Assembly (NCBI GenBank): GCA_039096225.1
Contig: JBBPEB010000009.1
Location: forward strand, 372,001 to 436,000
Source: Blastocystis sp. Blastoise
Lineage: Eukaryota > Protista > Bigyra: Opalinata
Length of the DNA: 64,000 nt
Direction of reading: 5' to 3'
Position 1 is the first letter of the stretch. Each line of letters starts with the position of its first letter. Shown one piece after another: positions 36,001 through 45,000 of the stretch. A program made the position numbers and the translations under genes. The notes under the pieces are model-generated. The model was given only the letters and a program-made list of their open reading frames with translations, made no database searches and was not told the DNA's origin.

Positions 36001-39000
36001 ACTAAGAATGTAACAGTTGTTTAATTATTATAAATAAAAATATATTTAAAAATAAATTGTTTGAAAAATGACTTGAAAGTGATTTTAATTAAACAATAAT
36101 TTTTTCTCTTTTTATTTCTTATTTAAAAAGTCTAAAATAATCTTATATAGGAATTGAACCTGATTACAATATAAAATAATTGTAACTCTCCATATAGAGT
36201 ATAAGAAATTAATATTTAATAAATAATAAATAATATATATAATATATAATATATAATATATAATAAATGACTCATATTAAAAACTATATATATATAATAT
36301 ATAAGATAAAAGATAATAAATATTTTTTATATACTCTTTATGCAGCCGCGGTCCGGGGCCGTTAGGCACTGGACCTGCGGCGTGACCCTAGTAGTATACA
36401 AAATAATACTCAATCTTTACTATCCGTTTCTATTACTTATTCTCCTCATGTTTCTCTTTCTTCTCCTTCAATTAGAACTATGAAGAAACAGGATATTATT
36501 TCATATTCTATTCTGGAATCAAATTCAAATTATAGAGAAACACAAAAAAAGGAGAAACATCAAAATATTCTCTATTTCTCAATACATGCTATTGATATAG
36601 ATGGAGGTACATATAAAATGAAACCAGTTGAAGTTATACCTGAAAGTATATATATTTATTTTATTTATTTTATTTATTATATTTATCTTATTTATTATAT
36701 TTATTTTATTTATTTATTATATTTATTTTATTTATTATATTTATTATATTTATTTTATTTATTATATTTTTTTATTTTATTTATTATATTTTTATTATTA
36801 TTAATTTTTGTATATACTATTATTATTATTATTATATATTTATGAATGAATATAAATATAGAAACCTATATAATTCCATTGTTTTCTGATTCCATACCAT
36901 CCTATGAAAAACAATACAACTCAACTATTCGTCAATATATACCAGTTACTAATGAATTTATATATGTATATTTTGAACAGAATTGTGAATGTATTACTGT
37001 ACATATAAATAGTCCTGTCAGAATTATAAATAATACAAATAGAATTATAGAATTATATCCTTATATACAAAAGCTATCTTCTACAAATAATTCTTCAAAT
37101 TCAATAAATAATAATAATAATAATAATAATAATAATAATATGAATAATAATAACAATAATTATATCTCAAATAATAATAATAATAATGACAATAATTATA
37201 TCTCAAATAATAATAATAATAATAATAATATCTCAAATACTAATACTAATAATTACAGTATGATTAATGATGGTAATACTGTTCTGAATCCCCCATCTAT
37301 CTTTACTTCTTCACCTACTAATAATGTACTCAGTACAAATATCCAACAGAATCCATCAGATTTTACTCATCGACGATCTTCCTCTCATATTCAGCCATCT
37401 TCAGAAACATTCAATTGTCAAGAAATATTATCTATTTATCCTGGTGAATGTATACCTATTCCTCTTGTATATTCTTATCAATCATTTGAATTTATGATAC
37501 GACCAAAACAAGAAGGAATTGATAGTGAATGGAGTGATCCTATATCTATAGATTCAATACCTGAAATGACCTCAGAATCACGGTTATATACAGTTTTAAA
37601 GAATAATAATATTACTAAAGAACGAGAAAAGATGAATTTGAAAGTAGATACACAAACAAGAACACATGGAAAATGTAAACGTATTCAATCTATATGCTTA
37701 AAGAAAAATGAAGAAAAACAAAGTTGGTATTGCTATTTAAAGGTATATATATATATATATGTTATATATTTTTTTGTTGTTTTTATTTATTTATTTATTT
37801 ATTTATGATATATTATTGTTATGTCTATTATATATATATATATATATATATATATATATTCCTTCTCCTTCCCTAGCGTAAGTTTACATCTCCCAAAGTT
37901 GATAATACAGAATCTATTCATACAAGTCATGCTGCTTATATATATAGACATACTATGGATATTGTTCTTACACCGGCTTATATTGTATATATATATATAT
38001 AGTATTCTCTTATTTTTTATTATTTCTGTTTTTTTTTTATTATTATTATTATGATTCAATTTAAATTAAATATATGATAATTTTATTCATATTTAATATT
38101 ATATATATATAGATACATAATAATTTGCCATTACCTCTTAATTATGCATTTTACGGTCCATTTGAAGTATTAAAAACACGTGGAGTATTAAAGAGTGAAG
38201 AATCGGAACAAGTATATATAGGAGATAATGCAACAGATGTTATGTATTTAAGAATTAATATTGAAGGATATCGTTGGTCACATGATGAGCCGTTACATGA
38301 TCCTAATAATCCTAACGGACATATTGTTCAAAATATTAAATTAGAAAAATGTCGTATATAAATATATTTATGTATATTGTCATATATTGTCATATATTAT
38401 ATATCTTATTATTATTCTATTATAGCTTTTGCCCCAAATACAATGTCTTCTATTATTCCTCCTTTTGTGTGTTGTATGAAATATGATATTGAAGATATAT
38501 ATATATACAGTCATTATATGCTTACAAACTATACTTCTATGCCGTTAAAAGTATATATTATTATACTTATTATAATACTTATTCTTATTATAACTATTCT
38601 TATATTTATTATACTTATTCTTATTATTATTATACTTATTATTATACATATTATTATTGTTACTATTAAATACTATTTATAGTATCGATGGGGAACATCT
38701 GAATCATTATTACCTCCAATAAATCCAATTCCCGCGGAAATTGAGTCCGATGGAATTGATTATTATAATAATTTCCATTATTATAAAATAGCTCCTGATG
38801 ATATTAATAATATACTAGCGGGTGGCATCGGCTTCGCCGATGCTATGTATCTATTAAGTCTATTTCAGTCAATTATTTCTTGTTTTTTGTTATTTATTTA
38901 TTTTCTTTTGATAATGATAAAGAATTATAAACTAAACAATATAAATTTTAAGAATTAACTAGCGGGTGGCATCGGCTTCGCCGATGCTATGTATCTATTA

Positions 39001-42000: not shown

Positions 42001-45000
42001 AATGTGGGTTAATGAGGGGATTTCTAACTAAATATTGTAAATTCTTTATTAAGAGTAAAATGATTTGATATCTCTTGCTTTTTATTTTAAAAATGTGTAA
42101 ATAATTTGAATATTAGATACCGTAGTTTAAAAATTATAAAATAAAAAATGTTGGAGGATGAGTTTTTGTCAATTTTTAAATGAAAGGTTTTATGTTTTGG
42201 TGGTTTATGGTTTATGATGACGATAGTTTTATTAAAATTAAAGGGTCAAAAGATGCGATCTAATTTTGTGGAATTTTTTTAAGTTTTATTTCTTGGTTTT
42301 TTATGTTATAAGTTATTTAATAATTAAGCTTTAAAAAGGTTTTTTAATTGTTTTTAAAGTTTAAAAATGTTTTATGTGGGAGAAATGTTGATTTAAAATA
42401 AATTTATTAATATTTAGAAATATTAAGTACATAAAGAAAAATATTAAAAATAAATAAAAAATAAAAAAATATAAAAAGAAAAGTAGAAAAATAAAAAATG
42501 AAAAAATTGAGAAAAGAAAAATAAATAGAATTTATGTGAAATATGTTTATTGATAAAAACAAATTTTGAATTTTGCCAATTATTTGGGGCATTTCCGTTA
42601 AATTTTTTTTGTCTTCCGTTTTGGCTTAGCGTGGAATTTTTGAAAATTTTAAAAGCGCGTCTAATCGTTTTTCATGTAGTTCTTACTCTGTTATCAGTGT
42701 AACATAGATATGTAACACAAAAAAGTAATCGGTCCATTTATATCAGTACAATTTTGTGCTTACTTATCCCTTTTATATATAAGATATAATAATAATATAT
42801 ATTCATATAGTACTACTCCCTATTTGTCTTATAATAATAATAATAATCAATCAACTTTATCTTCTAATGTCAATAATATGATGACTCTGACAAATGATGC
42901 GTCACCTTATCCCTCTCAAAGAAGTTTACTTAGTAATATAAAAGATAATGATATATATATTACTCCTCCTCTATCTTCTAGTAATATTATATCTCCGTTA
43001 TATTCACAATCATCTATTATTTCTATTAATGATGATAATAATAATAATAATAATAATAATATATATTCCTCAAATAGTAATCTATCTACTAGTAATCTAT
43101 CAAATAATAATCTATCTACTAGTAATCTATCAAACAGTAATCTATCTACTAGTAATCTATCAAACAGTAATTTATCAAATAGTAATCTATCTACTAATAC
43201 TATAATTCCATTAAATACAATAAAAAATTCATCATCACGATGTCCTTCTTTTGCTTCTGTTTGTAATCCCCATGAATCTGATCAATTTATTCCTCAAAAT
43301 ATTGATATTCCCATAGAAAAATCTGTTTTGAGAAGAAGAAAAAGTAAAAAACAAATGTTTAAAACAGTTCCAATTAAGTATATATATTATTTATTACTTT
43401 AATATTATTATTATTATGTTAATATAACTTTTTTGTTTTTAATATAAATATATAACTAAATATATATATATATAGTAATTCAACATATTCATTTAACTTT
43501 GAAGAAAAAGCAATATCACTTTTACATTTCTTCGAAAACCGTCGGGATCCACTCGATTATCGCGATTCAAGCATCTTTCCCCACGGGAGTATGATTTATA
43601 TTCGTGTTACATTACCTACAAATATAAAAGAATCATTATATTTACATATTGAGAAAAATAGTACTTTTGAAGAACTTTTAGAATATGTATCAAAATCATT
43701 ATATAATAATCCAAAGTATCTTTCTATATATGATTATAAATGGCTTGATGTTGAACATGAAAAACGAGAGATTACCATGGGAATTTCGATATTGAATTAT
43801 TTATATTCATTAATAACCATAACAAAAGAAGATATTAAAGAGAATTTAAAAGAAAATCATTCTTGGATGCATTTAGCACTTCGACATAAAATACATGATA
43901 ATATACGATTCTATAAACATGTATATATATACTAATATATTATATTTTATGCTTTATATTATATATTATTATATTATATTATATTATATTATATTATATA
44001 CTATTATATTATATATATTACATTATTATTATATATAGTATGAAAGTACATATCCTTGTGTTACATTTTCAGATCCTTCTTCTATTTCTATTTGTAACCC
44101 TCAGAATGAACAATATACAGACTTATCCTATTGGATAACTAATGAAATGGAAGAAAAACACTATTCGAATATCTCACTTCTTACACAATGTATATATAAT
44201 ATATATAATCTATATAATATATTATACTATTAATATATATAAATCTTTCACAACATATTTATACTATTTACTATATATATAGTATATTATTATAATCTAT
44301 CAAAGCCACTTAGTGTCATATCATCGTCATCCACCCTCCAAACACCGATTATTTCCTCCCCAGCAAGTACTTCTTCATTCGATGCCTTAGATCCATCAAT
44401 CTTTGAAATACCGTTAAAAAACTCACAAAATCAAATAATTAATAAAGTTATGGAACCAGTCACATTCCAATACAATCTAGTTCTCTCCCAGAAACAAGTA
44501 TATATATATATTATATATAATATAATATATTTATTATTTCTTTATCTATCTTATCAATTTATACTCTTCAAATAAATATTACGTTTATATATATATAGTC
44601 CGATATTGATAATATTTTTGATAAATATTTATCTTTATATCCTCAATATTATCTACATAATACTACCAATGTTCAATTACTTATAAATTTCACAGATTCT
44701 GATTATTATTGTTATTTACCACCAAAATCATGTGGACCGTTACATTGGATTAGCCAATCAAATTCAAGAGAATTATGTATCACTATTTTACAAAATACTT
44801 CAAATTCTTCAGAATTGTCATATTCATCAAATAATATCGTTCCATTTAATGTTAATACTAATAATAATAACAATATATATTCCAATTTATCTTTAAAAAC
44901 AAATCTTTGGTCATTTTCATATCCTTTTAAAATTGAAGAAACCAAAAAGTATTCTATTCGAATTCCAAGACAAAATAAGAAAGAAGGAACTGATGCAGTA

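Follow-up and report, generated by a model that had tools for sequence, protein, structure and literature searches.

A family B Helitron within a VPS13-like exon of Blastocystis sp. Blastoise: a real but ordinary insertion with a candidate splice option

We conclude, with a probability of about 0.68, that an autonomous Helitron, inserted by rolling-circle transposition, has disabled a spare VPS13-like copy in Blastocystis sp. Blastoise that is shortened at its N-terminus, and that transcripts of this copy terminate in the element; on the most likely reading, this is a commonplace case of a transposon knocking out a redundant duplicate. Judged from the DNA, the insertion appears real but ordinary and offers a candidate splice option. 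The window, the whole stretch of 64,000 nucleotides analysed, is C3:372001-436000 of the 33.34-Mb, 34-contig genome of this diploid tortoise isolate, whose Flye assembly was polished four times with racon (PMC10690189). In the mechanism that we favour, an autonomous Helitron, probably full-length at ~13 kb, would very recently have inserted at an A|T target in a VPS13-like exon and thereby inactivated a redundant duplicate. Transcripts would most likely end at the stop codon at 38956, or be spliced from the donor at 38847 to a nearer acceptor inside the element and then meet a stop, and the insert would owe its persistence not to splicing but to the remaining copies, chiefly that on contig C34, and to several full-length VPS13 genes.

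The insertion and its host gene

The original prediction proposed that an antisense Helitron interrupts a VPS13 exon at 38815-42784 and could be spliced out in frame, and its description of the insertion site proved accurate. The element ends at 38815 (CTAG) and 42784 (GA on the plus strand, i.e. 5' TC on the minus strand), the GT at 38847 and the AGs at 42783 and 42810 are present, and the insertion is exonic and antisense, in phase 0 between APDDINNI and YNNNIYSYSTTP, with the empty site preserved in three paralogues (Table 1). The host exon that breaks off at 38814 resumes in frame at 42785. Exact empty sites on contigs C5, C16 and C34 revealed an A|T target without target-site duplication and, since all three paralogous loci carry the contiguous exon, the insertion is both exonic and precise. 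The element cannot have landed in an older intron that ended at 42810, because the paralogues have a single exon there.

Table 1. Features of the interrupted exon, the inserted element and its surroundings (window coordinates)
Feature	Position	Strand	Remarks
Upstream family A Helitron	33799..36391	+	Ends 3 nt before acceptor 36394; absent from C16 and C34 by spacing
5' part of interrupted host exon, VAB region	38683..38814	+	Frame runs on from upstream exons; same exon in three paralogues; P0001 maps here; annotated in WA158_000543
Family B Helitron as assembled, 3,970 bp	38815..42784	-	Ends match 26-29 genomic copies; deletion-only alignment to C34:598176-611022
3' terminus CTAG with 8-bp-stem hairpin (38825-38843), 10 nt upstream	38815..38843	-	-9.5 kcal/mol, z -4.6
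Candidate donor GT, +33 of antisense element	38847..38848	+	Moderate score; used by public gene model
Proximal AAG acceptor inside element	38951..38952	+	Joined to donor 38847 in WA158_000543; product ends ...FADAIIN-stop
First in-frame stop (TAA) when element unspliced	38956..38958	+	
Second identical copy of 144-bp 3' terminal segment; second donor 38991, behind in-frame stop	38959..39102	-	
Eroded interior	39150..42600	-	Remains of Pif1-helicase end and 5' region; 400-bp A/T-only core 40861-41260
5' terminus TC (42784-42783)	42782..42784	-	Read on +, a weak AAG acceptor at 42783
Host exonic TAG	42809..42810	+	Top score among 270 exonic AGs; keeps the frame when joined to donor 38847; WA158_000544 pairs it with another donor
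3' part of interrupted host exon, Asn/Ser-rich linker	42785..43377	+	
3' end of second exonic antisense family B copy (19.4 kb, C3:433054-452465)	61054..61197	-	Phase 2 with an immediate stop; no erosion

Exons in the window encode exactly WA158_000543 and WA158_000544, NCBI proteins of Blastocystis sp. Blastoise, and word searches with individual exons gave no match. A domain search run exon by exon, with exon junctions translated only to verify the frame, placed the end of VPS13_M, VPS13_VAB, PH(-like) and VPS13_C regions in the expected order on the C3 gene; the profile matches to VPS13_M, PH and VPS13_C are individually weak, and P0001 and P0002, both public proteins, each give a VPS13_VAB match above the cut-off. 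No match to VPS13_N/chorein (PF12624) was found near any of the four VPS13-like copies with 35 of 112 candidates scored, the only matches, a lower bound, lying on C4, C22, C29 and at C5:441k. The C3 gene thus appears to lack the VPS13 N-terminus: it shares the domain order from the end of VPS13_M onwards with the VPS13 family of lipid-transfer proteins, but differs in having no chorein domain nearby, as would a shortened multi-copy offshoot.

This gene is redundant, and its tolerance of the insertion therefore needs no rescue. The exon at 38113 exists in four genomic copies with 100% protein identity, paralogous exons diverge by ~1-2%, and the linker in the interrupted exon carries in-frame indels of 3-15 nt among the paralogues. 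Comparison of the paralogues, by sequence over 3.2 kb and by coordinates further out, showed that the C5 copy is truncated at both ends, that the C16 copy has a 2-nt insertion in one exon and that the C34 copy looks intact across the 3.2 kb; no public protein was found for the C34 copy, which is thus a candidate expressed intact copy. A poly(A) RNA run contains 20% of the words from 42785-46100, which fits expression of some VPS13-like copy.

The C3 copy bears the family B insert and three further Helitrons, as four separate inserts, and substitutions specific to it lie to the left and right of the family B insert, for instance at 38736, 42815, 42846 and 42852. Judged by spacing, the family A Helitrons at 33799 and 46970 are absent from the C16 and C34 copies. 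The first of these lowers the score of the acceptor at 36394 from 13.3 to -26.9 bits, so that splicing of the C3 transcript has probably already gone wrong upstream of the family B insert. Counting against the knock-out reading are the ranks of donor 38847 and acceptor 42810 given below, the state of the other three copies and the reading frame of the C3 copy, which is unbroken aside from the insertions.

The window segment 29640-31670 is a multi-copy unit (~40 matches at 77-87% identity) containing a 499-aa ORF, and the VPS13-like duplication common to C3 and C16 begins directly after it, at 31672. The exon at 49555 has partial copies at G000 C5:262466 (-), C5:302012 (+) and C1:323744 (-), and the two on C5, inverted and ~40 kb apart, flank the truncated C5 VPS13-like copy, which suggests that they are part of a large terminal-inverted-repeat element.

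The Helitron family and the eroded interior of the insert

Family B ends have 26-29 matches across the genome, and most copies are 12-35 kb long and carry RepHel. The paired ends at C34:598176-611022 (12.85 kb) enclose a stop-free frame of ~1,630 aa with a Helitron Rep domain (PF14214), from which we take family B to be an active canonical Helitron family; a Pif1_2B match lies in the copy at 61054. All hallmarks of Helitrons were found: 5' TC and 3' CTRR ends, a subterminal hairpin, insertion at A|T without duplication, and RepHel in the autonomous members of the family. Canonical Helitrons of the Helitron1 type, such as Helraiser (PMC4778049), share the 5' TC, 3' CTAG, subterminal hairpin, A|T target and lack of duplication, as well as the HUH Rep and Pif1 helicase ORF (~1,630 aa in sister copies). 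The repeated 3' terminus of the 38815-42784 copy fits terminator bypass, and there is no essential difference from this type, the copy's own ORF being unreadable in an assembled interior that is eroded. The active Helitron family in tortoise Blastocystis is a useful side point; a literature search returned no report of it.

The length of 3,970 bp assumed in the original prediction was not borne out: the interior is that of a longer autonomous element, worn down by deletions. Alignment of the arms of the insert to the autonomous C34 copy (12.85 kb) gave 2,374 matches, 3 mismatches and 701 scattered deleted bases in 397 events, with 0 insertions, and scored 2,066 as compared to 228-245 for locally shuffled targets. 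On both arms 52-63% of C and 3-5% of G were lost, and base loss is zero at the insert junctions and climbs inward to the 400-bp core, which is almost wholly A and T. Sister 3' ends, including that at 61054, have 0-1 deleted bases in nine cases out of ten. We know of no mutational process that gives this deletion-only, C-biased pattern. Natural decay of an old copy is ruled out by 0.13% substitutions versus ~23% deletions, and a real 4-kb non-autonomous subfamily is ruled out because no second copy shares the deletions. The assembled length is thus probably an assembly artefact. We infer that the insert was cut down by repeated consensus polishing with reads lacking it, the 3,970 bp being a racon-type consensus of reads with and without the insert (from the other haplotype or from paralogues), and the real insert is probably a very young copy, longer than assembled, of ~13 kb. 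Some inserts in the Blastoise assembly would accordingly have been eroded by polishing, and their lengths and interiors are not to be trusted.

Such erosion would also be expected if most cells lacked the insert, as a minority allele or read-level chimera, and the locus mostly yielded the normal exon: many polishing reads would then lack the insert, and the insert at 46970-48594 is eroded likewise. We consider this improbable, as both junctions are exact and typical of the family, C3-specific substitutions flank the insert on both sides, the locus holds four separate inserts, and reads from the three empty paralogues suffice to explain the erosion.

The insert at 46970-48594 (-) belongs to family A, and its alignment to sister copies is dominated by deletions. 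Read antisense, its 5' end supplies TATATATAG as an acceptor at 48588, which at 6.5 bits is a closer terminal mimic than the family B AAG, and the public model WA158_000544 places a short exon (48153-48203) inside it. Strand-skewed tracts at 52225-55050 and 57100-57900 resemble eroded inserts of other elements; no parent element for them was found among the loci compared.

Splice signals and public gene models

As a splice reference, we used 88 introns of window genes, 35 of them curated and 53 predicted by a small gene finder, and thus biased towards the consensus. Donors read GTATAT in 65 of these introns and acceptors TAG in 85 and AAG in none, with a median length of 87 nt and a maximum of 261 nt in a set from which predicted introns >300 nt were excluded; a prediction run without splice priors gave AAG acceptors in 2 of 53. 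AAG acceptors are rare in the host, not absent, and the proposed HUS1 AAG acceptor of a 39-nt in-frame intron is a plausible candidate. The donor at 38847 scored 6.3 bits, which places it above 97% of exonic decoys and at the 20th percentile among real donors; within the first 5.3 kb of the antisense element, only one GT outscores it. Its claimed likeness to the HUS1 donor context extends up to GTATCTAT and ends after it (6.3 vs 10.8 bits). The terminal AAG at 42783 scored -9.9 bits, a value equalled or surpassed by 44% of unused exonic AGs, and the host acceptor at 42810 reached 13.0 bits, the 60th percentile of real acceptors. A scan of the full-length element outside its middle ~6 kb found an acceptor at +2814 (11.0 bits); joining the donor at 38847 to it leads to stops within 15 codons.

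With a donor at the 20th percentile and a terminal AAG matched or beaten by 44% of unused AGs, the idea that the termini mimic host splice signals was not confirmed. It is highly improbable that family B ends evolved to resemble the host (AT)n signals, such that 38847 would be spliced to the AAG at 42783 and leave 33 nt, as introners behave. A GT at +33 is present in 28/28 family B 3' ends scored, every copy shows TATATATAAG at its 5' end when read on the gene strand, 33 nt is divisible by three and both exonic copies found are antisense, but the donor context is weaker in 16 of the 28 ends (3.3 to -10.9 bits) and hence gives no sign of selection for the donor, which is not conserved across family B subfamilies. 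Nor do AAG acceptors, used in 0/88 host introns, or the size of most copies and their RepHel content favour such an origin. Among ~18 paired family B copies (a lower bound), only those at 38815-42784 and 61054 are clearly exonic, and these two cases are too few for an orientation or phase bias. The original prediction that the 61054 copy meets an immediate stop was correct, its phase being 2; the antisense 3' terminus of family B is stop-free in two of three phases, which makes phase weak evidence for rescue.

Splices from 38847 to 42783 and to 42810 would both be in frame and stop-free, as anticipated. Use of the host TAG at 42810 would remove nearly the whole element and replace YNNNIYSYS by LAGGIGFADAI in the low-complexity linker, which tolerates in-frame indels of 3-15 nt among paralogues. 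Such a leaky rescue would pair a donor and an acceptor that rank high among their local competitors (second-best GT and best of 270 exonic AGs) and that public models have each chosen separately; it is nonetheless unlikely, because the intron, in reality probably about three times as long as assembled, would measure 4-13 kb as against ≤261 nt in the host set (limited as above), the nearer AAG at 38952 and the strong TAG at +2814 would compete, the upstream acceptor at 36394 is damaged too, and an annotation accepting junctions with ≥3 reads leaves the two halves unjoined. In its full form, in which a ~13-kb autonomous Helitron would be removed from the VPS13-like mRNA as one intron by its own 3'-end donor and an acceptor of the host lying 26 nt beyond the 5' terminus of the element, we regard this splice as distinctly unlikely. 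Were it true, intron gain would have been caught at its outset in a genome with normal introns of ~90 nt and with three empty-site paralogues as controls.

The public pipeline used RNA-seq junctions with ≥3 reads and preferred models with supported introns. It splits the C3 VPS13-like gene at the insert into WA158_000543 (607 aa), which ends three codons after the 38952 acceptor, and WA158_000544 (1,568 aa), which enters at 42811 from a two-residue exon, so that the donor at 38847 and the acceptor at 42810 are never joined. Because these model ends look ab initio and the reads of four near-identical copies multi-map, the split is only indirect evidence against frequent in-frame splicing. Given a redundant and damaged gene, an eroded length, a modest donor, a weak AAG, the split annotation and the stop at 61054, we do not favour rescue by in-frame splicing over a knock-out of the spare copy.

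Relation to spliced transposons, and other family B copies

Maize Ds and dSpm elements are spliced imprecisely from exons (Lal et al., 1999, as cited in PMC4528327). There, as would be the case for the Blastocystis insert, an antisense element provides the donor close to one of its ends, the acceptor is cryptic or terminal, and a short footprint stays behind; the maize cases rest on cDNA, whereas the present splice is a candidate predicted from sequence.

Splicing of a Helitron from an exon would not be new in kind, as Helitron-derived introns are already published (PMC12130899): in a survey of 8,716 genomes, Helitrons make up ~1% of confidently classified introners, including family 5 of Suillus subalutaceus (Gozashti et al., 2025, PMC12130899). 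Like introners, the Blastocystis insert is an exonic transposon, with candidate splice signals that come from the element itself or are borrowed from the host. However, introners are families of annotated, correctly spliced and mostly non-autonomous introns (PMC12130899), whereas the present case is a single candidate that the annotation does not treat as an intron and that is probably of autonomous size, and its sister exonic insertion leads to a stop. A search for several introns similar up to their exon-intron boundaries yielded two exonic insertions among the ~18 pairs (a lower bound), one of which stops, and host-like splice signals amount to a moderate, non-conserved donor, a weak terminal acceptor and a strong host acceptor. 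If the splice were true, a large autonomous Helitron would join the known introner cases and provide a natural test of intron gain, with filled and empty copies in one genome.

Most intronic family B copies look antisense to the host gene and lie within (TTA)n tracts, according to low-score predictions. At C34:595040-611022, two family B copies (L003/L031 and L019/L042) occupy introns between repeated micro-exons of ~21-24 nt, introns that are probably inside the micro-exon gene of another Helitron. At 62027-64000 of the window, the family B copy starting at 61054 harbours a nested family A Helitron in its helicase end. Three family B 5' ends (L034-L036) lack the A that normally precedes such ends on the element strand, and two of them, L035 and L036, have the same coding-like flank, which suggests an extended 5' end or a duplicated block.
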